From contig JBNJNM010000021.1 of assembly GCA_052426225.1 (NCBI GenBank), positions 372,001 to 436,000 of the forward strand: 64,000 nucleotides of DNA. The letters are read 5' to 3'. This document shows positions 8,537 through 36,557 of the stretch, in pieces. Position 1 is the stretch's first letter; every line of letters starts with the position of its first letter. The notes under the pieces are model-generated. The model was not told the DNA's origin and searched no databases. It worked only from the letters and a program-made list of their open reading frames with translations. This stretch comes from Zancudomyces culisetae HAW-14-8 (lineage: Eukaryota > Fungi > Kickxellomycota). A program made the position numbers and the translations under genes.

Positions 8537-9329
8537 ATATACTTACAGCTTTCTCTTGTCCAATATTCCTATATAATAACTAACTCTTACATTCCAACAT
8601 ACTATTATTATTATTATTCGAGATTTCAATATATTTTAAACAAGATAATATATTATTTCGAATTTTAAAACTTCTATTTGCTAGCATTGGCATAAAAGAA
8701 GGCAAAAAAAACACATGAACAGAAATACTGAGTATATACCAGCAATATCAGAAAATATGCACTTTTTACACCTTTGCACGTTCTATTTCAGCGTTGGGGT
8801 ACGCTGTTATATAAAGGCACTCCAAGGATCGTGTTTTCTAGATACAGTACTATTATTATGAATACTGTATTACTATTGCCGATGCCTTGGTTCTATGCCC
8901 ACTTTTGCATTTATACACACTCCTAACACTACCACTGCTGGTACATTTTTTTTGTCCCCTGTCTCAACCTTTTTTTTTTCGTGTTTCTTTCACCTTCCGC
9001 TTCCCTTTCATACATTCCCTCTTCTCCCCACATTTCCTTTTGTTCAACTTTCTCTGCTAAGGCAGTCTTGTTTTTTATGACGTAAAAGACCAAATCAAAA
9101 CATAGTGGTTACAGAAATAGGAGTATATTTCAAAGTTTTATTTATTATAAAGACAAAAATGATATCAAATAGACTTCTCGTTCAGCTCATACTTTGGCAT
9201 AACCATACCCATTGCTGGTGTACATTTCCCACTATTTCAAAGTCTTATTCGCCACCAGCTGTCACTAGATTTATGTAGTTTTTTTTACTGCTGTTTTTTT
9301 CTACAAGTAAGCGTAGCATCGGACTGGGA

Positions 9330-9602
9330 TCATTGTTTGGCCTGTGCCTCCATCAGAGCCTGATTTTCTTCGGCAAATCTTAGCCCAACTCGTTCGTTTA
9401 ATTTCATCATTTTTTTGGTGCAGTTTCTGCTACAAGTAATCTCCTTGGAGGATGTTGCACTGCTTGTGAATTCAGTTACACAATCGTCAAAACACCTGGT
9501 CACCAATGTTGCGTATAGTCGCATGAAATCCTTGATTTGCTTTTGTTCAAGCATGGCTTGCATTTGTTGCTCTTGTACTGAATTGCCGTATCCTCCGTAC
9601 AT
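9330..9602 (-). CDS. TIM9: Mitochondrial intermembrane-space small Tim chaperone
   Basis: 90 aa with twin CX3C motifs (CFDDC, CSRNC); EQKQIKDFMRLY and ERVGLRFAEEN are typical of Tim9. Confidence 0.93.
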   Translation of the reverse strand: MYGGYGNSVQEQQMQAMLEQKQIKDFMRLYATLVTRCFDDCVTEFTSSATSSKEITCSRNCTKKMMKLNERVGLRFAEENQALMEAQAKQ

Positions 9603-10280
9603 TTTGTTGTCGACTTTTGTGTTTTTTTATCTAGTGTCTTGTGTATTGTGTCGTGATTTAGTTTATACTTTTCGGATACCTACTTTGTATATTTCTGCTT
9701 TTCGAAATTGGCTAGGCAAAGATTTAATCAAAAGAAATTTTGATTCAGAAACAAAATTACGCATTTTTAGGAGGGGGAGGGCAGGATATTTTTGAACAGT
9801 TTTGCTTGCCCCACAAATAGCAGAGAAGATTTGCGCTTATTTATTTTTTGTTTGCTAGGAAGACCTGTGGATAAAAAAAATTTTTTTATTTGCAATTACA
9901 GAATGTATCCAGCTATCAGCGTAAGGAAAAAATACTGATTTGTGAAAAATGCGCCTATTTCTAACTAGGCATTTGATTAGCCCAGTCTTGTTTTCAGTGT
10001 TTTACATTTTTCAATATTAAGCAAACCTATAAGCACAAGTGAACCTCCCCGCCTTGTTGGAGTTTGTTAAATTTGAGATCCACATCAAAGGGAAAAAAAG
10101 GAGAGATGACATGGATATATCAAGAAAAAGATAGGATATATTGCCGAAAATTTAACGTAAAAAGCTGGAACTCAAGTATTAAACTGCGGTCATAACATAC
10201 ACAAAGATACACTAAAATGAAGAAAAAAAATAATCCAAGAAACTAATAAAAGAAAAAAGAGAACAAAACGCTGAAATAAC

Positions 10281-21388: not shown

Positions 21389-24300
21389 TTTGCGAGCACC
21401 GGCGGGTTTGTTTGGTCGAGAAGGAGAATTTGAGTCTGAACGGAGGTAAGCAGGATGAGACTGCTGTTGCTGTTGCTGTTGCTGCTGGGGAGGAGGAGAT
21501 TGGGAGTATTGATCATAAACATTTGAGTTTGAATAAGTCATCGAAGGGTCGTATTCATAGTCAAATTGCTGGGAATTTTGTTGTTGAAACTCATTTTGGT
21601 GTTGAATATGAGGTTGGCTTTGTTTGCGAGAAATTGATGAATAAGACATGTTTTGTAGTTCGAATTCTTCATTTTGGTTTTGGTTTTGGTTTTGATAATA
21701 AAGATTAGGATTTGAACCATATTGATAAGGCTGGCGTGAGTAGGTGGGAGCGGCAGGAGTGTGAGAAGGAAGAAGAGAAACGCCCTCAGCCATTTCGTCA
21801 TCAAATGTACGACTGGCAAAGTCACCACTATGCTCAAGTTCGTAAGATCCATTGCGACTTTCGGCATGTTTGGCATTACGCATGTCGCGGATTCGGCGGC
21901 GCTCATAGTCCTCCCAACGTCTGAGAGGAACCATACGGGGATCGAAATCGCCATCGCCAGAGCCGTGACCATCGTCTGTACCCTTGACTTCGCCTTGGAC
22001 CTTGCGGGTTTCGCCCCAACTGAAATCGTCAAAGTGCCAGTAGGCATATACAGGCAGCACAAAGTTCCAAACAGGAAGGGAACACAAATAGATGGCCATC
22101 CACATTAGATAAATCCATTTCTTGGTGGTAAAGACAATGAGGAAAGCAGGCATAAACAAAATGGAAATAAGCATAATCAGCGGAATGTAGTCGGAAAAGC
22201 CGTTGTAAGTCGCCTTGAATACAGATATTATCAGAACAACTGTCATCATAATAGCCACAGGCAGTGATACAGTACCAATTAAATCCAAAAACACACTAAA
22301 CTGCATGGACAAACAAAACGTGCCACACAATCCACGCACAAGCACTAACTCCATCAGGTTATGGACAGTCGAGTTGATCCAACGTCTACGTTGAGACAAC
22401 AGAACTTTGAACTCGTCGGGGACCATTGTTTTGCAGATTGCTTGAGGCATAAACATCATTTTGCGGTTCGGGAAGTTACGCAACATCAGTGTAGATAAGT
22501 ATCGATCCTCACCCAGCAACATCAAATTCTTTTCATGCAACGTAGTGACTACGTTTTGAGAGTAATCCTGTACAATCTCTGGTTTAACCAAAATCGGTAC
22601 CCAATCCTGTCCCTTGCGCGCCTTCAATCGATACATACAGAAACATCCAGGAAGACATGTAACACCACCAAATACCGACTCAAAGCCCTTACCCAAGTGA
22701 TGTGAAATATAGTATTCATATACCTGGATCGCTGTCACCCACGAATCACGTTTATTTGCTATCTTTGTTTCTCCGCAAATACCCATAATCAAGTGGTCGT
22801 TGTATAAGCAATTCACCAGCAACCGCAAACTGTCTGGGTACACTCGTGTATCTGCATCAACCATAAGCACTATTTCAAACAAATCTGGAGTTGCCCCTGT
22901 CAAATGGTGGATTTTGCGGAACAAATCGTAGTCTAGTGGCGTTAGTCGGTCGTTGTAGATTACTCTTGAAAAGAATCCCATCAAAATAATCTGCGAATCA
23001 CGCTTTCCTCGATTACCTGGCTTGGGGTCGTTCTTTTCTTTATCTGCACCGCACTTCACCACCACTACTGTTGGCACGCGATGTTGTCCCACCCTGTAGT
23101 ACCCGCAGTACACTTTTGCTGCATTCATTTGTTTTGATCCTGATCCTACTGCCAAGTACAAAGATGGCTCCGGGTTCTCAAAGATTTCTTCCTGCTCAAT
23201 CAACCCCACACAGATATCTGGTGTTGTTTGTGTGTTTCCCGACCCTTTGATGATTCCGTCAGCAACTATAAACAACAACTTGCGCATACTGCTGTACTCT
23301 GTTTGTACCAATGAATCACATGTCCCTCTAATCGAATCTTCTCCCTCACTATAACATGTTACCAACATTACCGTATACAGTTCATCGCTTTCTCCTTTTC
23401 CCACCCCCTTTGTCGCCCCTTTTGTGGTTGCTCCCTTTCCTGACCACGGTGCTGATGCATTATACGATATTGGTCTTACTCTATCTCGTGCTGGTCTTTT
23501 TGTTAGATTAGGTGAAATAAAATAGCTGAATCCCAATGCCATACAGAATCGTGTAAATATAATTCCCAAAATTATTGTCAATGCAATATAATTGTATAAC
23601 TGCACTCCAAAGCATCCTACTGTTTGTTTTGCCAATATTCCAGCCTTATACTTGGCAAGAATACACTTTTCTGCTGCCTTCAAGTCATCTGATTTCATGA
23701 AATACACTGTTCCGTCTGATCCTGATTTGCTTGCTGCTCCCAACAATACTGCATCCAGTAAATCCGACTTTGGATTATTCTTTGTTGCAATCAAATACGG
23801 GTTCAAATTCACTACTGCTCCGTTTAGTGTAAACGATCCTTGGGTCACATCTTCCCAGTCAAACCCAATAGGTTGGCCCAATGGCTCCAACCCGTACGTT
23901 TCAATTGCTTTTGGTAGTTCATCCAACGGGCACCCACCATTTCCGTTTTCTGTCTCGCATGTACTATATTGAACTGCCCTAAATTTTTGTATTGATGGAT
24001 CCTGACATTCTTTTGGAGCTGATCGTTTAAAATAGTTTGTGATATCTTCTCCTGGTTTTGGATTGAAAGTTGATGGCCATTTTGCATTTTGTGTCGAATA
24101 TGCCTGTCCCAATATTCCTACAGTCCCTGGCGTTTTCCCCACCATCAGCGCATTATTTTGCACTTGCGACTGCGTGTCTGGACAAAGTACCATCCCCAAA
24201 AATAGCGTCAAAAACACCAATACTCCACTTATCAACACAATTATAAAAATCAATGCTATTTTTTCTCTCCATGCTTGCTGCACTTCTGGTGTTCTCTTAC

Positions 24301-24490
24301 CAGCAACCTTTGCGAGTGCCGCCCCCGGAATGAAAAAGGTCAACACCCTTGAAAAGGCATACCATGGGCCTGAGCCCGCCTTTCGGCTCCCCACTAGTGG
24401 CTCATCGGCTTGCGTCCTTTCTGGACGATACAGTGTCCTATTCCGACGCACTGCTGGGTTGTTTAGGTTTTCTCCTCGGTCTATTGGCAT
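21374..24490 (-). CDS. Chitin synthase, division 2 (class IV/Chs3-like)
   Basis: AWREK, TCYSEG, GNRGKRDSQ, MVDADT, TCLPGCF, LGEDRYL, SQRRRWINST and WHFDDFSWG motifs; no myosin motor domain. Confidence 0.97.
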   Translation of the reverse strand: MPIDRGENLNNPAVRRNRTLYRPERTQADEPLVGSRKAGSGPWYAFSRVLTFFIPGAALAKVAGKRTPEVQQAWREKIALIFIIVLISGVLVFLTLFLGMVLCPDTQSQVQNNALMVGKTPGTVGILGQAYSTQNAKWPSTFNPKPGEDITNYFKRSAPKECQDPSIQKFRAVQYSTCETENGNGGCPLDELPKAIETYGLEPLGQPIGFDWEDVTQGSFTLNGAVVNLNPYLIATKNNPKSDLLDAVLLGAASKSGSDGTVYFMKSDDLKAAEKCILAKYKAGILAKQTVGCFGVQLYNYIALTIILGIIFTRFCMALGFSYFISPNLTKRPARDRVRPISYNASAPWSGKGATTKGATKGVGKGESDELYTVMLVTCYSEGEDSIRGTCDSLVQTEYSSMRKLLFIVADGIIKGSGNTQTTPDICVGLIEQEEIFENPEPSLYLAVGSGSKQMNAAKVYCGYYRVGQHRVPTVVVVKCGADKEKNDPKPGNRGKRDSQIILMGFFSRVIYNDRLTPLDYDLFRKIHHLTGATPDLFEIVLMVDADTRVYPDSLRLLVNCLYNDHLIMGICGETKIANKRDSWVTAIQVYEYYISHHLGKGFESVFGGVTCLPGCFCMYRLKARKGQDWVPILVKPEIVQDYSQNVVTTLHEKNLMLLGEDRYLSTLMLRNFPNRKMMFMPQAICKTMVPDEFKVLLSQRRRWINSTVHNLMELVLVRGLCGTFCLSMQFSVFLDLIGTVSLPVAIMMTVVLIISVFKATYNGFSDYIPLIMLISILFMPAFLIVFTTKKWIYLMWMAIYLCSLPVWNFVLPVYAYWHFDDFSWGETRKVQGEVKGTDDGHGSGDGDFDPRMVPLRRWEDYERRRIRDMRNAKHAESRNGSYELEHSGDFASRTFDDEMAEGVSLLPSHTPAAPTYSRQPYQYGSNPNLYYQNQNQNQNEEFELQNMSYSSISRKQSQPHIQHQNEFQQQNSQQFDYEYDPSMTYSNSNVYDQYSQSPPPQQQQQQQQQSHPAYLRSDSNSPSRPNKPAGARKLERR

Positions 24491-27400
24491 CCTTTCTTCA
24501 ACTTTTTCTCGTTTTTTTATATTTTTTCTCTGATTCTAGTATTTTTCAATGTTATTTTCAAGTTAGCTTTGTTTGTTTCTTTTCTCTTATATATACGTTT
24601 ATGGTCGATATACCAATCCACTATATCGCTATTCATATTTATTAATTGGTTAAACTCCTTACCGCTTATTTAGGGTCTTTTTCTTTTTTTGCTAAATGCT
24701 CGTGATTGGTAATACTCTACAGAAATATTGAAATTTAACTCAAAAAATACAGTATTTTGATTTAAATTCACTCTTTCTGGTTTACTCTTTTTTCTTTGTG
24801 TATTTATATTCTGTCTAGATGATTTTTACTTTTTTCTATAAAAGATACACTGAAATACAAACGAGTTCTCTTTTTTTTTTGTTTGCTTGTTCCTCTTATT
24901 TTGATTATAGATTTTTTTTTCCAGATTTAGTCCTGGATTTAAATTAATCCAACCAAAGTTTTCGTTTCCGTCGAAATCGAAAATTCTCTGTTTTCACCTC
25001 GCTATTTTGGCGGTTGGGATTTGGGATTTTAGTCCGAAAAATAATAAGGCTAAATGGTGATGGGAACAGTTTTTTTTTTTTGCCTTGGACTAAAAACACT
25101 TTTCCAATTTTAGTTCAATGAACCATTCAATCTCTCTCCTTTTTTAACTTTCAATTCCCCTCCCAACCCCCTCACCCTACACGCATCTCTTAACGCATTA
25201 CTAACAAAGTATTTAGAAATAAACCCTCAAATACGAGCCAGTTGGGAAATAACCAAGTCTTGTTAATGTTTGGAACACATCAACCCATTAATTACATTTC
25301 AACCCCTTGCGCTTTTTTCTTTTGTTTCTGCTCTTTTTAATTCGCCGTATCCAAAATCTATTATTCAAAGTACAAGTGTGTAAAAAATGGCTTTTTACAC
25401 ATAGGGTCCAACACCATAACCCATTAACCCAAAACTTTATCATGATTTTTTTTTTGTCATTTATTTGCTTTTAGTTTTTGTTTTGTCCTATGGATAAATA
25501 TGCTGCCAATTGGATATGTATTTCTTTTTTTTTTTTCTCAAGGTCATGATTGTTATGTAACTCGCTACTATATTTTGATTCAACTCTATCTTTTGGCTCC
25601 ATTCTATTTGCCCTGTTGCAATATACAATTAAACAATGAATTTGTTGGGCTTTTAGACCAGTTTCCATAATTACCAATCAATTTCCCAGTTAGCCAACTT
25701 TTGTTCAATTGTTTTTCTCCACTCTTGTAAATCATCGTGAACACTTCAAGTATACCCAAAATGTTTTCGTTTTAGAACGCTTTTCATCTAGCTTTTGCTC
25801 GCCTTCTACAAACTAAACAGCGTTGAATCAACAGTGATGTGGTAGCCGATATGTGCCGTATCTTATTATAAAAGCTATCATCAAGTCAGTGGAACAACGC
25901 ATTACAACGATGTCAACGAAGATAAACTATACACTTGGATGCAATGTTTACTACTCTCTTGTTAAAGTTTTTCTTTCTTTATTGCTATTTTATCATCATT
26001 TTTTGAGGGGAGGCAAAAGATCTTGTAAAATGTCATTGACACCAAGACTCTGCATTTGAGAAAAGGCATGTTCTCTCTTGCTTTGAGCCTCATTACCTAT
26101 TAGAGTCATGAACTTGGCTTTTAGAAAAAAAGGAAATCCAGCAAATAGCTAAAAGTTTACGGCAAATTTCTGGTTGTAATTTCTCTCAAATTAGAAACCA
26201 TTAGCAACTCAATAATCTCGGCAATCTCGGCAATCCCAGCAAATCACATATCTTCTACCAGTTGCAGCAATCTATGTTCTTTTTCTTCACTATTTGGCCA
26301 TATCATCTTGTCCATCATATCTTAAAGAATCAGCCTGCAAAGTATTTTAGCGATAGCAGAAACATCCAAAGATCATTAATACATAAGTGTAGATATCGGC
26401 CAAGGCGTTGATGATTAAGAGATAATTCCCTTTTTCTAGAATTTTCATCTGGGTCATCGGATTCCGTTTACTACACATGCTTTTTTTGTGTGAAAAAAAA
26501 ACCATTATATATTAAACTCGGGTATTTGTGATTTTGTGATATATAAACGACAATGGCAGCAACAGCTTCCTTGGTAGTTCATGTTCCTCTATAATTTTTG
26601 TAGCGTCTATGCTCTTATGTATTTATATAAATTTCTTGTTTGAAAGCAAGAATGCGTCAACACTGAGTTAGACCCTTGTGATATGGGCTCTTTACATATT
26701 ATTTACATGGTATATATGGTATATATGGTATTTTTTTTACATAGTTTACACTTCAAATGTATTTCTCTTTGAGAATAAGACACGTCTGTACATACATTAT
26801 AAATTATTAAACTTTGCTTTTTATCTTTTACTTGATCATTATCTGGTGGTTTTGGCAATCAGATAATTTGCAATACCACCTTATTTCCAAGCAAAGTCAG
26901 AATGCGCTTCTTTATATATTTTGCATGGATATCATAATGGAAATGAATAAAGAAATGTCACAAGGGTGTAAAGCCCGTCTGTGCTATTATAATTTTACTA
27001 AGATCGGGTAGTCGCAGCTAGATGCACTAAAATTAGCAGAAACTAACAATAGGAATGTCTGTATTGTTGACATAAGATAAATATATATATTTTTATTTTC
27101 TAGCATCCATCAGCTGTTTTTTGGTAGATTCCATTTGAATAATAGCCTCCAGTTTATTGGGAGTGGAAAAAGATGCTACTTGTAGTGACAACAACGAAAG
27201 TGGCAAACATACTGAGCTAGCATTAACAGTCCTGCGTGTTGGAATTCAAATTTTTTTTGTGTCTGGATAGATTTTGTTATCAAAAATATTCAACTCAGAA
27301 AAAAAAAAAGCCAGCCTAAAAAAAGTTTTTTTTATGTTTTTTCTGCTTTGTCTCGCTATTTTTTTATTTTTTTCATTCTTTTTATCATTTCCTCAAATTT

Positions 27401-27815
27401 TTGTTATCCGTTCAAAAAAATAAAAAATAAAAAAAATAATAGGCTCAATCTATCAGCAAAAAAAAAAATCCCTGTATCAGTAAATAGAAATTCAGTTTTT
27501 TGCACATTAAAAACTTGGTTGAAATTATCAATTTTAACTTTTGCTAGTTGCAAAAAAAGATAAAACATCTAGGCTCCACAATAAAGAATATTTTCCTATA
27601 TCTTATTAATTGTTAAAAAGGTAACATTTAAAAATATATTCAAAATCAAGTGTTTTATACATTTAAAACTCTGACTTGGCACAGTCAAAAAGTGTAGATT
27701 CCAGCATTTTGATTCGATTGCAGCCCTATAAAATTCCAGATTATAACTTGCCATTCCATACAAATTTAATAGATTTTAACGAGATCAGTCATAAAAAGGA
27801 AAACATATAGATAAG

Positions 27816-29809
27816 ATGCAAAGACTATTTTCCAGAAGATTAAACAAGGTAAATATTCATAATCCACATTTAACTATTTATTTTTTTTTCTTCTCACCTC
27901 CAATCTGCGATCCATTGGGCCACACTTAGTATTATGATCATGGTTGAAAGAAATGATAAAATGAGCAAAGCTTAAATTTTGAATTTTCTTTAAAAGCATT
28001 CGAGAATACTGGGGTTTTGCTAGTTGGAGATGGCAGAAGAGAAATGTGAATGACTACTTGGAAAATGTTTCAGGTGGCTGGGACCCTTTTTCTATAATAT
28101 TTTTCAATTTAGATATAAAAATCAATATTTGAGGATCAACACGAGAGGACTATGGCTAGGATGATCTATTTGAATTAGACTAGGCATTCAGATTGCTAAT
28201 AACGATTAATTTATTTTCAAAAAAAACAATAGGGATTGTTGTCCAACTTGAACAAGGTTACCAGATATTCCACACACTCAGGACCAAAGACACAAGTAAC
28301 TACTCTTTCAAATGGATTTACAGTTGCAACTGAAACAGATCCTTCAGTCAAGACAGCAACAGTAGGAGTCTGGATCAATGCAGGAAGTCGATTGGAAAAC
28401 GAGGCAAATAACGGCAGTGCACACTTTTTGGAACACATGGCCTTCAAGGTACGTATGCTATTCGCATAGTGAAATATAAGCTTAAAATAGTAGCGGGGAT
28501 ACAATAAATTAAAAATTTAGTCAAAAATGCTAACAATACTGGTAATATTACATGAAATATCTAGGGAACCAAAGCAAGAGGACAACATGATATCGAGTTG
28601 GCCATCGAAAACATGGGAGCACACTTGAATGCCTATACTTCACGCGAGCAGACAGTTTACTATGCCAAGGCCTTTGAGAAGAACGTTCCTGAATCTGTTG
28701 ACATTTTGGCAGATATTTTGCAAAACTCAAGATTGGACGAAGGAGCTATTGAGCGTGAGAGAGATGTTATATTGAGAGAGCAACAAGAGGTTGAAAAAAT
28801 CATGGAAGAGGTTGTGTTTGATCACCTCCATGCTACTGCCTTCCAGAGTAAGTTTATTTTCCTCATGATGATCGCTTTGTATCTTGTGTTTTTTTTACAA
28901 TGACTTACATGATCAATAAATATAACAACAATAATAGACTCATCACTTGGATATACCATTTTGGGTCCAAGAGAAAACATCTTGTCAATCACCAAGAACG
29001 ATTTGACTAAATACATTGAAACCAACTACACCGCAGACCGCATGGTTCTTGTTGGCGCTGGTTCCGTCAAACACGATGAACTTGTCAAACTCGCTGAGGC
29101 TAAGTTTGGTGGCTTGAAGCCAAGCAACCCACCATTCGCTTTGCAAACCACAAGAGCCAAGCCACCTCGCTTCTGGGGATCCGAAGTCCGTGTCCGCAAC
29201 GATGACATCCCACAAGCCCATATTGCTCTTGCTGTCCAAGGTGTCTCATGGTCACACCCAGACTACTTCACCATGCTGGTTCTTCAATCCATTGTTGGAA
29301 ACTGGGACAGAGCTTTGGGTGCTGCTGGAAACATCTCATCCAGACTCTCCCAAACCGTCTCCAAACACAACCTGGCCAACCAATACATGTCCTTCAACAC
29401 CTCTTACAACGACACTGGTTTGTGGGGAATTTATATGGTTTCTGAGAACCTCACTCACCTCGACGATTTGGTTCACTTTACTCTTAAGGAATGGAGTCGC
29501 CTTGGCGTTTCTGTTTCTGAAGCTGAAATTGAACGTGCCAAGCAACAGCTCAAGACTTCTTTGTTGTTGAACTTGGACGGAACCACCGCTGTCGCTGAAG
29601 ATATTGGCAGACAAATGTTGACTTATGGAAAACGTGTTGAGCCACGTGATATCGCTGCTGCTGTTGACCGCATCACCGTTAAGGATGTTCATCGTGTAGC
29701 CTCTGAAAGAATTTGGGACAATGAGCTCGCTGTAGTTGCTCTCGGAAGTGTCAATGGTGTACCAGACTATAACCGTGTCCGTTTCGGCATGTCCTTCATG
29801 CGTAGTTAA
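27816..29809 (+). CDS. MAS1: Mitochondrial processing peptidase beta subunit (M16B); 4 exons (27816-27848, 28233-28448, 28565-28847, 28938-29809)
   Basis: Presequence exon [11 protein letters not shown], inverted zinc motif [15 protein letters not shown] and [14 protein letters not shown]. Confidence 0.96.
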
Positions 29810-29914
29810 ATTCTCTTTCCTATTACATTCACTATTATTACTATCCCTAAAATAAATTATTGGCTCATTTGATCTTGTCTTTTTTACTTTATTATTATTT
29901 TTTTGTTGAGAGAG

Positions 29915-31095
29915 TGTGGAGAGAGAGACAGAGAATATGTGTGTGGGGGGTGGGGGGATTCTAATAAGTACTCGGAGAAAATGTTCAACTTTAATTTTAT
30001 TTTTTCTGATAGGAAAAAAAAACACCAACAATACCGACTGCGTTTGAGTTTCTGGTCTGTTGGGTTATGTAAATACCAAGATATTTAAGGGCTTGAATGT
30101 TGGGGTGCTTGGGTGCTTGGGTGCTTGGGTGCTTAACAACATGTATTATTTTTACTCGTAATACAAGTATAGTTACTTTTCCTGCTTAAACAGAGTTCAG
30201 AGAGGAGGAAAGCGTGTGCCTGGGCCGCTGGGTGTTGATAGGAATGAAACTGACTACCGGCTGTGGGAGGGGGGGAGTTGAATCTTTTCCAAAATTGGCA
30301 AAAGTGAGGCCTGGTACACAAAAATAGAAACTCTCATCCCACTTTATTTGCTTATAGTTCATTTCAACAGGATTCACACCAGTTTCGACAAATACCTTAT
30401 CCTCGCACCCTTGAGCCCAAATACAACGACTCTAGGTATCAGTAAAAATAATAATAATAGAATTCTGGAACACCAATATGGTTTGCGCCCCCCACCGTTT
30501 GTATTGAGTGTTATGTTTCTCCACAGTTGCCAGCGTTTATAAACGGGATTTACTCACAACCTAAACTCGGGTACCCGAACCATGTTGTGTTTTACAGCAT
30601 GTTATATAAATTTATGTTCATAGGTATACTTGGCATACTTTTCCCAAAATAGATTCAGGTGCGCTAATATATCACTGAGTTCTAATTACGCAAAAAAACG
30701 CATGGTTATTTTCCTCTTTTTTCATTTCTGGGTATTTACGTAAGCGTATTTGAAAAAGATGATCCTACTTTTTATCCCAATTAGACAAAGCTTAAACATA
30801 TGTGAATATCAAGTGATTTAAAGTAAATGGCATTTTTGATATAGCAAATAAAAGCGGTTTATGTAATCGTTTAGTTTGTTATTACTATTGGCTAATAGAA
30901 GCTCCTATCACTGAGCGATATAAAAAAAATGAATATGAGTGGGGTTAGGGTTAGATTTGGTGAGTGTCTTCACTGTTGTATCCAATAATCCTCTTGCTTT
31001 TACTTCTTTTTTTTGGGATTACAGATACGATTAGTGCCTTAACCATTATCATATGATAAATCGCCAATACTATTAGCTGTTAAATCCCGTTTACA
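29915..31095 (-). ncRNA. Candidate telomerase RNA (template 5'-CUAACCCUAACCC-3' at 30954-30942)
   Basis: Template-like motif enclosed by a 15-bp helix (31095-31081 with 30552-30538); stem 5' of the template; a second nested helical domain at 30525-29915; most G-U pairs near the template fit the minus strand. Confidence 0.5.
30103..30134. repeat. (GGGTGCTT)x4 tandem repeat
   Basis: gggtgcttgggtgcttgggtgcttgggtgctt. Confidence 0.95.
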
Positions 31096-31716
31096 TATCC
31101 AGGAACTCAAACGCAAAACCTTTTAGTGCGATTTCCTTTTAGGAAAGAAAAAGTAAATCAAACTTACGATTTGATTCATTTTATTAATTTGATTACATAA
31201 TTCTCTATTTACAGATTTAAAAAAAAAAGGTACACTCCCAATCATGTTGCGGTTAACTTTCATTTCCCCTCTGTTGCTTTTTTTCTCACTTATAAAAGCT
31301 TCCTGACCAATTTAGTTTTGACCGACTCTTAGCTTTTTTTTAAAGAAAAAACAGTATACCTTCTTACGAATATTATAAAGGGGGGTACAAGTGGTAACTA
31401 TACACCATTAGCCTCTAAGATCGATTACTTTTCAGCCTTTAGATTTTCTGATATTTATATTCATAAATATCAATATAACCTCCCCTTCACCCTACCTTTT
31501 ATTTTTGGTTTATTACTGTTTTTATTATATTTATGATACATTAGATATTATCCCTAGGACCTGTTAGATATTATTAGCCAAAATATAATTATAAGAATCA
31601 AAAGAACAAATCCGATTCTATTGAAAATAACGAACAGGAAAAACATAGAAACCTCAACCTAGAAAAAGAAAAGAAAGGAAAGCGACTTAAAACCAAAAAC
31701 AAATAAAGAAAACAAC

Positions 31717-33055
31717 ATGAAACTCTCTACAGCAAAAGGAATCGGCGGTGTACTATCTGTCTTTTTGACTCTTACTTCAGCTCAACTAGACTGTGATAGT
31801 ACCCAGAACTACTGCGATAGCGAAGGAAACGCTGTAAATTGCAACAAGAATGCACTCTCTGTCAACGCTTGTCCACAGGGCTTCCAATGCATGGTCATTG
31901 ATCAGAAGGCTGTTTGCGTTGATTCAAAAGATCACAACGACGCATCAAAAAATAGAAGAGATGGTGGTCTATATTTGAGACAGGGAACCGTAGGAACCCC
32001 AGCTTCTACTACTGCAAACGGTAAGCGTTTATTTCCATCATTGTCACTCTTGTATTTTTGTAGAACTTTGATCTATCTTTGCCAGAATTCATGACTCTAG
32101 TCAGCTGGTATAAATAGACAAACCATCAGCTTGAAAAGAACTCACAAATATGTCTAAAGCTACATATTTACTTAATACACTCAGGTTCGTATTAACACTT
32201 ATCTTTAAAACTATAGACTCACAAGAACAAAACGCTCCCAGATCAACACCACAAGCTGTAGTCACTCAAACAGTAACTGCTTCAGGCGCGCCTCCATCCA
32301 GCCCGGCACCATCCAGTCCAGCATCATCCAGCCCAGCGCCAAACACACCAACATCAGCATCCCGAACAACTTCGTCAGCTGATAACAACAACAACAATAA
32401 CAACAACAATAACAATAATAACAACAATAACAGTAACAACAACAACAACAACAATAATAATAATAATAATAATAATAATAGTAGCAGTGATAGATCATCT
32501 TCAAGTTCATCCTCTTCTCAAAAGACCACTACCACACAAACTTCGAATGCAAAGACTACCACTTCAAGTGCCGTTAGTACAAACGATCCTTACTACTGCC
32601 CAAATGGAAGCAATGATTTCTGCTTGGACGACAACACACTAATGATCTGTAGAGGAAACAAATGGGGGTCTTTATCGTGTAACTCGAGCCAAATCTGCTT
32701 CACTGATGGAACCAAGAATAATAAGGCATCCTGCGAAGACAAGGACAAGGCCACAGCATGTAACGTACAAGGTATGTCCAGATGTGATGCCATTAGCGCC
32801 AATGCATACTCTACATGTGATGGTAAATCCTGGGTATCCTACCAATGTGATAATGGTGAAGTGTGTCAGCCAAAGGGTGAAGATGAAATCACCTGCGTTC
32901 CTGCAGACCAAGTTGATGAAAGCAAAATAACTACAATGCCACCTGCTACACCCTATGTTCCCCCTTCATATGCTCCTAAAAACGCATATCCTTTGACTTT
33001 TATCTCCATTTCTCTCTCTCTACTTTCTACAGTTTTGCTGTTCTCTACACATTAA
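31717..33055 (+). CDS. Secreted, probably GPI-anchored Cys-repeat (CBM19-like) protein; 2 exons (31717-32020, 32217-33055)
   Basis: Signal peptide, Cys modules of the type C-x-C...C-x-G-x-W-x4-C-x4-5-C, an S/T/P and poly-Asn linker, and a hydrophobic C-terminus. Confidence 0.85.
32382..32480 (+). repeat. Coding (AAC/AAT)n microsatellite encoding poly-Asn
   Basis: About 32 Asn codons interrupted by one AGT. Confidence 0.95.
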
Positions 33056-33319
33056 TCAACTTTTTTTTAAATTCCTATCTACCTTTTTTTATTTATTCTT
33101 CTTATCACGTATGCTTTGATAGTTAAAAGTAAAGCATTTGTCGCGAATCATGGTCTCTTTTGGGTTGTTTAACATGGTAGTGTCAAAACAGTGTCAACAT
33201 TAGCATTGTGGATTTTCGTTTATATAATTCCTTCATTGATGTGTAGTAGACAGCTAAAAAAATTCTAGTAAATCTTAATAATTTAAAACATTTTAGTTCA
33301 TCTATAACCTTATAACGAG

Positions 33320-35045
33320 TCAACAGAAATTCAAATCCTTTGTCATCTGAGAAAAAATAATCGAGATATTAAGCAGTGATTGCATCAAAGTAATTCTATC
33401 AGTGAGCTTTCTGATGTCAAGAATATCCGAAACCTCGATCAACTCATTTGTGTGGTCAATCGCAACCAACAAAACGTTGTATCCGGCGGTCGCATAACCC
33501 AGCATGTATGGCAGATGATGTGGTATTCCTATCTTGTTCTCCTTCATTTTATCCGTTAACTCCTGTGCTATTTTACGAACACTGCCTTTCTTTTTTTCCT
33601 CACCTTTAAACACCAGCATCTTGTTCAAGTAAGTTAAACAATAATCTGGTCTTAGTTTTCCTTTAGTCATAGAAACCTCAGCCGAGTTTCTGTTATACGT
33701 AAATCCAGGATTATGTAGCTTCAGTGCCTTAAACACAGGACCTAGTATTACATCTATGTTTTGCTGTAGGAACGCTTCTGTGGACTTTTTATCGCCCTCT
33801 GGATCCCTCGCAACTCCATGTATTATTTCAGTCTCAATCTCTGAGGAAATTTCATTACCAAACTCAAATGTCTTGCCAAACTTATCCTCGAGCTTGTACT
33901 TCTTGATTCGTCTGTACAGGTGTATGTAATGGCTTTTGTTTACCCTAATTTTCTGTCTCAACCCTCCTGATAAATGCGTTTTTAATTCACTGAGTTTTGG
34001 TATCTCATTGCCTGAGCTGTATACTGCATCTACAAATTTCTTTGAATCAATCAATTGGTTTTCTTCGTTTCCAACACTGTTTATACTACTGATACTGTTC
34101 TTGTTACTCTTTTTTACAAGCGCTTTGGACTCACCAATGTTCATCTCGTTGATTTTAGTGACTATTTCTTCAACTTCTGATTTTAATCGATCCAAATCAG
34201 TAAACTTTAGTCCACCTGTTGCACTTTTTTTGACACTTGTATCTGCATTTGAATCTTTGGCTTTCAAAAACTCTGCATACATGCTGTTTACGTGAGCTCG
34301 CAACCCCGTCAAGAGATTTACACTCGGTTCAACATCCTCTTTGCTATTTCGTTCCATTACCGGTTTTATCTCTTTATCGAATGTAAACATAACTCTGTCG
34401 TGTTCGTATGAGTTTGTGGTACCTGATGCCAACGTGCTAAACGATTTGCTCTTTTGCGAAATTTTCGACTGCCTAGAAACAGTCCTTGCCGCAGTTTTAT
34501 TTATACCCTCAGCTCTATCAACCGGGATAATCGGATCCCTTTTATCGTCGTCCTGGCTGTTCACAGCCTTATTTGCAGTCCTACTCCTCGTCTGTACTCT
34601 GCATTCTATTTATATAGTTAAACTCGCTCTATAGTCTATTTTTTGAATAAAGCTAAATAAAAAACAAAATAAAGAGAATTGAAGATAGCTTCTTGCTGCA
34701 TAGGAAGTACCAGCAAGTATAGAGTTACTCACCTTCTGGTTTTTTGTTGATAGCTTTATGTGCTTCACCTTTTGCTAGCTTTAGTTTAGCATCATGACTC
34801 CCATCGGCTACCTTTGCCTTGATACCACTATCTATACCAACCCTTAGGTCTTTTGGTATCTTTAATGTTGTGGCTACATTTTCATTACTACCTTCTTTAC
34901 TACTAACAGTCCGGGTTCTATATCGTTCTAATATCAGACTATCACCTTTCTCAATTACGGTTTTTTTGGACATTCTAGTATTTAAAGCACACTTGATTTT
35001 TGTTAAATTTTGGTCGCTAACTTTTTGTACCATTATTCTCAACAT
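33320..35045 (-). CDS. Crinkler-associated PD-(D/E)xK (REase-fold) domain protein; at least 2 exons (intron 34732-34606), start uncertain
   Basis: RPDY...VFKGEEK...ELTDKM...LPYMLGYATAG matches the REase domain usually found before the kinase in CRN proteins; ORFs 34725-35054 and 33320-34564 join in frame through GTGAGT...TAG. Confidence 0.75.
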
Positions 35046-36557
35046 TTGAGTCAATATAAAGGAGAATACTGGATACTAATATATCATTTGCCTATCACTA
35101 TCTTATTTATTTTATTCCTTTCCAATACACATAGAATTGGTGCTATTTATATCATTGTTGTCCTCAAAAAAGTGATAAGTAATTGAACACAGAAACTGTT
35201 TTTTTTACCATAAAGTGTACTATTAATCTTATTCATAGTGTATTTATTGAAAAATTAGCTTTTATACTTGATTAGCGGATAAAGCATGTGTGTCTGCATT
35301 TGGTCTACATTTTCGGACCAACATCACAAGATCTGTGCAGCTGTGATAGCCAAAATATTTCACTATTCTTTTATTTCACAATATATATATATTTAATTTC
35401 AGTTATCTATATGTTCACACGCTTAGTTTGTGCAATTATTGATACGTTAAGGTTAACATAAATAATTAAAAGTACAATATTCATCATTTTCTTTTAAATA
35501 TACTCATGATATCGAGGATGCTAAAATTGTGACCAAGTTAAAGTTGGCATACGCAACTGTTCTCTATTTCTATGGTTAATTGGTGTATTTAAAGCGCACA
35601 AGCTGTCCCAAGACAAAATCCCATTTTATAAGTGTATCACTACAAACAGGTAACCGAGAAAAAGAGCCATTTATTTCAGTTTATTTTACACTAGCATTTT
35701 TTCCAGTTCCATGTCATAAAAATAAGAAAATACTGGTTTTACCTAGACCTAGAGTAAGAATAGTTCACGTAAATTGAACTTTGCTTTTTTTTTTTTCCAT
35801 CCATTTTTTCCCGTTCTTGTCCATTGGTTCGCTACACAACAGGCTTGTTTTTGTATGTCTTTTTTCGGTATGATACATACAAAAAAAATACCATAACACT
35901 TGTTCAATTTTTAGATTAGTTAATATTTCTCAACCAGGTGAATGTATGTTTTATTTTATATCATTATTATTTTATTTTTTCAAAACATGAGTCGAGTATA
36001 TCATGGGAGATGTGCTATATGTCATATATACACCATAGATACCAAATGTGTGGTGTATGATAGTTTTTTCAGGCTGAAATGAAGCTTTTAAATCAAATGT
36101 ATGTGCACGTGAATATATTGTGAGCAGGTTCACAGGATTTCGCGGTTTTGCAGTATTTAGCACATCTATTTTTCTGCCACTTTGTTGACTCATGAGGATC
36201 CACATAGTATATTATATATACACAGTGCAACATATATTGTGAGTAAGCAGAGTTTATGCCAGCAAATCATTTTTGATACAATGGTCATTCGATCACGGAG
36301 GTAAAAAATCACTAAACTTAACCCGCTTTAAAAGCAAATAGCTAAACAAAAATCTAAAAGTTGATAGCTGGAAGTTGAGAGATGTCGGCATATTTGAGTG
36401 TCATAAAGCTACGTAATTGCCCTTTACCAGGAATTGTAAAATTTTTTTATTAAGATTAATGCAAAAGCTGAGTAGTTGGTTTGGTAAGTACAGAAATGGC
36501 AATTAAAATGATGGTGCAGGTTTGATAAAAAGATGCAAATAAAAAAAGATATTAAAT

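Follow-up and report, generated by a model that had tools for sequence, protein, structure and literature searches.

A candidate telomerase RNA gene beside MAS1 in the zygomycete Zancudomyces culisetae

Introduction

Which RNA serves as the telomerase template in fungi outside Ascomycota and Basidiomycota, and can it be recognized in a gap between two genes of Zancudomyces culisetae, which lives in the gut of mosquitoes? Telomerase RNAs are established in Ascomycota and Basidiomycota. The literature searched holds no validated telomerase RNA for Mucoromycota, Zoopagomycota or chytrids, and the sole suggestion there from early-diverging fungi is an unconfirmed ciliate-like RNA in Lichtheimia.

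The need for such an RNA can be read from the genome. Long TTAGGG arrays are found on contig ends, as anticipated by the earlier note that proposed the present gene, and a match to Telomerase_RBD, the RNA-binding domain of TERT, lies at C8:1867664-1867975 (C numbers denote contigs). Together these mean that the organism uses telomerase with TTAGGG and must have a template RNA somewhere. The terminal arrays, at C13:2800-3300 and on other contig ends, contain many degenerate units, including TTAGGGG. These may be real variants or long-read homopolymer errors.

The locus and its setting

The DNA analysed, here called the window, is a stretch of 64,000 nucleotides (C21:372001-436000) from the 27-Mb, 25-contig assembly of Zancudomyces culisetae HAW-14-8. 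This assembly matches the published PacBio HiFi genome, and a transcriptome of HAW-14-8 has also been published (BioProject PRJNA1254182, PMC12611240). Positions given below without a contig are those of the window.

On one side of the locus lies MAS1, whose last exon ends at 29809 on the plus strand. Searched alone, with the exons left unjoined, this exon matches the known mitochondrial-processing peptidase beta subunit of Zancudomyces culisetae at 100% identity, and its nearest relatives are found in Furculomyces and four Smittium species, at 77-82% identity. On the other side, a gene with a signal peptide and a weak CBM_19 match starts at 31717, also on the plus strand. The gap of 1907 nt between them has ORFs of at most 64 aa (at most 46 aa in its conserved part), and these small ORFs have no Pfam match. 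A gene on the minus strand of the gap would be convergent with MAS1 and divergent from the gene at 31717. The candidate stretch is single copy in the genome.

Every sequence feature that the earlier note described in the gap is present. The features considered here are collected in Table 1.

Table 1. Features of the candidate locus, in window coordinates.
Feature	Position	Strand	Remarks
Variant-free block upstream of helix A	31116-31251	minus	AT-rich, TATA-like runs
Helix A, 5' strand, UGCGUUUGAGUUCCUGG	31115-31099	minus	pairs with 30055-30039
Helix B, 5' strand, including ACAGC	31095-31076	minus	pairs with 30560-30538
Hairpin 5' of template, template-boundary-like	31028-30978	minus	in minimum-energy and centroid folds; variant-free
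Small hairpin GUGA/UCAC	30974-30961	minus	6 nt upstream of template; in minimum-energy and centroid folds
Template-like motif, CUAACCCUAACCCC / CTAACCCTAACCCC	30954-30941	minus	two full repeats plus one base on each side; 14 nt
U8 tract	30922-30929	minus	11 nt past template; possible pseudoknot or triplex strand
Helix C (third complement), 13 positions	30743-30731 with 30077-30065	minus	crosses helix B; one C.A on minus
Helix B, 3' strand, GUUGU-GAG-UAAAUCCCGUUUAUA	30560-30538	minus	pairs with 31095-31076
Variable 3' domain between 3' strands of B and A	30537-30056	minus	five variant events; fold z +1.8
Helix A, 3' strand, CCAGAAACUCAAACGCA	30055-30039	minus	pairs with 31115-31099
U9 tract (30022-30014) and AAUAAA (30001-29996)	29996-30022	minus	just past helix A

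The template-like motif

The template-like motif proposed for the minus strand is confirmed, and its 14-mer occurs once in the window. It contains the human template CUAACCCUAAC. A telomerase template has to be complementary to at least 1.5 of the organism's own telomere repeats, and CUAACCCUAACCCC is. As a template, however, its 14 nt would be atypically long by comparison with the 9-nt templates (UAACCCUAA) of known TTAGGG fungi (PMC9564094).

How much weight can be given to such a motif depends on how often it is found elsewhere. Of its 29 genomic occurrences, 26 are inside terminal arrays. The three internal places are the present locus and one duplicated pair, against two for a reversed control. 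Because the reversed control occurs twice, the 14-mer alone is at chance level in a whole-genome scan.

The duplicated pair lies at C21:2060824-2060837 and 2110117-2110130, in an inverted duplicated segment whose copies are 50 kb apart and 94% identical over about 760 nt. Each is part of an interstitial (TTAGGG)3-4 tract, and the copies differ inside the tract, one of them with a T-to-A change. A dispersed repeat family with 16 listed places, one of them at C21:1618173, carries TACGGTTGAGTTCCTGG in a GC-rich, coding-looking stretch and is probably a transposable element. A metagenome scan with a 20-mer around the template returned eight contigs whose flanks were unrelated, some looking like coding sequence by eye, and was set aside.

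At least seven other telomerase RNA candidates have been proposed in the same genome, two of which were located. The candidate at C21:63868 is weak, having a 9-mer only; another, beside three U3 copies, is weak as well, having an 8- or 9-mer that differs between the copies. The three U3 snoRNA-like copies are on one contig (C15:176210-176508, 220298-220596 and 321252-321550), and all score under the Rfam gathering score (48 bits vs 95). Near the copy at C15:321252-321550 there is sequence that reads as a tRNA by eye.

Predicted structure and strand

The helix said to enclose the template (31095-31081 with 30552-30538) is present, with 15 contiguous pairs of which one is G-U, and its pair probability is 0.7-1.0 in the full-length fold. 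So is its ACAGC/GUUGU extension, in which 31080-31076 and 30560-30556 form five pairs across a 3-nt bulge. Just outside this helix B lies a new one, helix A, of 17 positions: 16 Watson-Crick pairs and one C.A on the minus strand, which is G.U on the plus strand. Its predicted pair probability in the full-length ensemble is 0.85-1.0. The two helices are nested, 3 nt apart on the 5' side.

Helices of this kind are uncommon. A and B are the only two in the 64-kb window with at least 15 bp and a GC count of at least 5, and two of the four in 244 kb sampled (the window and 18 random 10-kb pieces, allowing at most one G-U). Elsewhere, helices this strong occur roughly once per 90 kb.

The stem and the small hairpin claimed 5' of the template were both recovered (Table 1). 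A telomerase RNA needs a closing helix and a boundary helix 5' of its template; in single-sequence prediction, helices A and B and the hairpins at 31028-30961 would supply them. The third complement, helix C, is contiguous on the plus strand with one G.U and has probability 0 in the minus-strand ensemble. It could represent either an alternative pairing or a tertiary contact.

Could these helices be the ends of a foldback or terminal-inverted-repeat transposon, of which multiple copies sharing their inverted repeats would be expected? Only one copy of the region exists in the genome, and the helix arms (both arms of A and the arm of B) are unique there and belong to no repeat family, which removes this objection to the earlier proposal. 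A 15/17 likeness of arm A to a repeated element was dismissed as a sign of a transposon end, the flanks being unrelated. Elsewhere in the sample, a contiguous 31-bp inverted repeat pair with one G-U is found at C12, about 1,907,800-1,909,100 (piece L033:7797-7827 and 9096-9126). It flanks a 1.3-kb segment that looks like a non-autonomous DNA transposon.

The earlier note also held that G-U pairs form on the minus strand only. This is true of the helices it described, helix B having two G-U pairs on the minus strand, but it fails for helix A and the third complement, which have C.A on the minus and G.U on the plus strand. The long helices have four transition mismatches, and two of these point to the plus strand. 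With the wobble evidence mixed in this way, the strand is not settled by wobble pairs.

More broadly, the locus could be a DNA relic without RNA function, either an old inverted-repeat or foldback element or a healed break that left an interstitial telomere seed. The comparable inverted repeats in the sample, such as the C12 pair, do resemble transposon ends; interstitial telomere tracts are present in the genome; and wobble positions without strand preference are what decaying DNA repeats would show. Against this, the region and its arms are unique, the element resembling arm A has unrelated flanks, and the arm order a b c b' c' a' is unlike a simple inverted duplication. The scarcity of variants described in the next section would also be unexpected for a neutral relic. 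Such a relic is very improbable.

Folding statistics do not support the assignment to the minus strand. Compared with shuffled sequences, the minus strand has a z-score of -0.1 over its full 1091 nt; taken in pieces, its core scores -0.65 and its 3' parts score -0.53 and +1.8. The plus strand gives -2.43 and, for 30030-31120, -2.75. Local 200-nt windows are unremarkable on either strand. The plus-strand fold of 30030-31120 is made of long-range pairs rich in G-U, including GGUUAGGGU (30943-30951) with GCCUUAACC (31036-31044).

Variation between strains

Three haplotypes were compared: the window and two contigs of GCA_001969505.1, an older Illumina assembly of another strain, COL-18-3, at about 99% identity. 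LSSK01000071.1 corresponds to 25072-35787 and LSSK01000891.1 to 21815-32403. These two contigs differ, and this points either to two haplotypes in that strain or to a duplication that was collapsed. Annotations of the locus conflict between the two contigs, one having an 85-aa multi-exon minus-strand model and the other a plus-strand first exon that runs through the telomere-like motif.

The gap of 1907 nt holds 20 variant events, of which one (30635) is in the core, 30538-31115, and none is in 30636-31251. The chance of at most one event in the core is 0.007, and that of a variant-free gap of at least 617 nt is 0.0085. The 617-nt variant-free interval ranks third in 14 kb, and both longer ones are protein-coding. 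The variant rate of the core (0.17%) is level with that of the MAS1 exon (0.12%); the flanks have 1-2.6%. The most polymorphic part of the gap is the proximal promoter of the next gene (31252-31716), with 12 events in 465 nt. The variants are too few for their effect on predicted pairs to be read.

Upstream of helix A, the variant-free block at 31116-31251 is possibly a promoter, a 5' leader or both. The 3' domain between the 3' strands of B and A is variable, and at about 30134-30103 (minus) an 8-nt tandem repeat, (AAGCACCC)n, has 4, 3 and 2 units in the three haplotypes.

A telomere-like motif, two rare helices and a polymorphism desert thus fall on one 600-nt core. This would be very unlikely if the sequence were neutral, so a functional non-coding element is probable. 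The constrained non-coding element likely comprises the template domain and about 136 nt upstream.

The same observations can be read as ordinary intergenic DNA in which chance produced the motif, the helices and the variant-free interval independently of one another, and they drew notice because a whole genome was read for motifs. Many telomerase RNA candidates have been proposed in this genome, the 64-kb window has many gaps of 2-3 kb that lack long ORFs, the local fold z-scores are unremarkable on both strands, and the desert rests on two to three haplotypes. What makes coincidence quite improbable is that helices found about once per 90 kb, a desert with P of about 0.007 and a 14-mer with about two independent sites per genome coincide on the 600-nt core, for which the joint expectation is estimated at far under one per genome. 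Chance and a DNA relic, taken jointly, are still improbable.

Search for telomerase RNA hallmarks

In telomerase RNAs, as the earlier note pointed out, a separate CR4/5 or three-way-junction domain follows the pseudoknot. The P6.1 hairpin is common to vertebrates, Ascomycota and Basidiomycota. In its canonical form (4-bp stem, NUNGN loop), a scan of the minus strand over 29810-31716 gave three weak AU-rich matches, none of them in a plausible junction. No P6.1-type hairpin was found in the variable 3' domain (30056-30537) either, and no Rfam match points to such a domain.

The pseudoknot suggested from U-rich and A-rich segments fared similarly. No H-type pseudoknot with a loop-1 U tract and a stem-2 A run was found in 30960-30530 by a scan for canonical forms.

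Searches with known families were negative. At E up to 10 the locus has no Rfam match, and at gathering scores the window has none. RF00024 has no match on the genome; nor has RF02462, which was searched in a stricter mode, so that this result says little.

The 3' limit once placed at 29915 is unsupported. The 3' domain varies from strain to strain, and its fold is poorer than those of shuffles (z +1.8). On sequence grounds, the U9 tract and AAUAAA just past helix A may be 3'-end signals. No Sm site with a 5' splice site behind it was recognised at the locus.

These results leave room for another functional element in the conserved 600-nt block, either a long non-coding RNA on one strand or the other or regulatory DNA, with the 14-mer being coincidental. 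The polymorphism desert indicates constraint and is silent on its cause; it is the plus strand (z -2.75), not the minus, that folds better than shuffles; half of the transition mismatches favour plus; P6.1 and the U/A pseudoknot were not found by the scans; and about two 14-mers of such composition are expected per genome by chance. By estimate, however, one would fall in a given 617-nt block by chance only about 6 times in 100,000, and here it sits in the place expected of a template, between a hairpin and a U tract and within an enclosing helix. The desert is no extension of the promoter of the next gene, since the proximal promoter is the most polymorphic part of the gap, and neither strand matches any Rfam family. 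An element of this other kind is somewhat unlikely.

Search in related fungi

Conservation of the candidate beside MAS1 found no support. Around MAS1 in Furculomyces and in four species of Smittium (Harpellales) there is no telomere-like 10-mer and no nhmmer or blastn similarity, so that the five relatives yield no homologue there. Synteny is broken at these loci: where neighbours were called in Furculomyces and Smittium, the genes beside MAS1 differ, with GET3/ArsA or TFIIA downstream.

The MAS1 locus of Smittium simulii has, in the same order as here, a 19-mer identical to window 31162-31144, a look-alike hairpin and UAACCCUAA followed by U8, the last lying 900 nt downstream of the 19-mer on the same strand. 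As a homologue this was dropped, because it scored no higher than reversed and off-target controls (37.0 vs 35.6) when tested by local alignment and by chains of exact words or ungapped segments. The 19-mer was also rejected as a shared promoter element, having no enrichment in the genome over its reversed control. Between the genes for DAHP synthase and MAS1, Smittium simulii has a very AT-rich stretch of 7.9 kb (piece L014:2073-10001), in which the 19-mer and UAACCCUAA lie, with a single ORF of at least 70 aa (82 aa, 9578-9826).

Comparison with known telomerase RNAs

The telomerase RNAs of Pezizomycotina and Taphrinomycotina (Neurospora crassa, Aspergillus, Schizosaccharomyces pombe) are about 1-2 kb long and have a 5' template of the TTAGGG type (PMC3592445, PMC3603654). 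The candidate is like them in its size, its 5' template, its upstream boundary helix, its one or two core-enclosing helices and its variable arms, and it matches the layout of the fungal template domain, in which an enclosing helix, a hairpin, the template and a U tract follow one another (PMC3592445, PMC3603654). In contrast, the 9-nt template, the pseudoknot with U-A.U triples, the P6/P6.1 junction and the 3' Sm site with a 5' splice site are features of those RNAs; none was found in the candidate. RF02462 gives no match on the locus or on the genome, where the search in a stricter mode says little.

Another comparison is offered by the basidiomycete Ustilago maydis. Its telomerase RNA, of about 1.3 kb, serves TTAGGG synthesis, and P1 and a template boundary element belong to its template/pseudoknot domain; putative templates lie at 782 loci of the genome, the true one being 9 nt long (PMC9564094). 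The candidate shares the size of about a kilobase, TTAGGG, a P1-like helix and a template boundary element. The two differ in that the Ustilago maydis RNA has P6.1 and is released by cleavage from an mRNA 3' UTR, whereas the candidate would run towards MAS1 and away from the next gene, and P6.1 was not found in it.

With vertebrate telomerase RNA (RF00024) the candidate has in common the human template CUAACCCUAAC within its motif and a P1-like helix enclosing the template domain. It differs in being about 2.5x longer and in having no recognised CR4/5 or H/ACA domain and no RF00024 match.

Proposed mechanism

If the candidate is a telomerase RNA, 31250-30000 (approximate limits, minus strand) would be a single-copy non-coding RNA gene whose 5' half forms the template domain. 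TERT would align CUAACCCUAACCCC with the TTAGGG chromosome ends and copy it onto them, and the hairpins at 31028-30961 would halt copying at the 5' edge of the template. Helix B would close the template domain and helix A would tie the 5' end to the 3' region, with an arm of 480 nt, variable in sequence, between helices A and B. From the DNA we infer the transcription, strand and ends of this RNA, its binding by TERT and the role of every helix.

Evidence for this reading is provided by a motif that follows a hairpin, precedes a U tract, lies within an enclosing helix and has a conserved upstream flank, in a genome that needs such an RNA. Against it are the missing P6.1 and pseudoknot, the folds that favour plus, the length of the putative template and the fact that the candidate is known from the DNA of one species. 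The earlier claim of a telomerase RNA from an early-diverging fungus stands in part: TTAGGG ends, single copy, the TERT RNA-binding domain, helix A and the polymorphism desert argue for it, while P6.1, the pseudoknot, the strand and conservation on the MAS1 side do not. That the locus encodes the telomerase RNA of Zancudomyces culisetae is a tentative reading, with a little under an even chance of being right.

Implications

As a candidate for the first telomerase RNA of an early-diverging fungus, the locus is reasonable but unproven. A stronger statement is that it would be the first from a zygomycete (Zoopagomycota, Harpellales) and would depart from the plan of animals and Dikarya. Its template would be 14 nt long, its two stacked enclosing helices would have 17 and 20 pairs, and neither P6.1 nor a standard U/A pseudoknot would be recognisable; this we regard as unlikely. 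If it is true, P6.1 and the U/A pseudoknot were reshaped or replaced in this zygomycete lineage.

If validated, an RNA from Harpellales would anchor the comparison of animal and Dikarya telomerase RNAs, and it would tell whether all fungi descend from an ancestor that already had the P6/P6.1 junction and the triple-helix pseudoknot.
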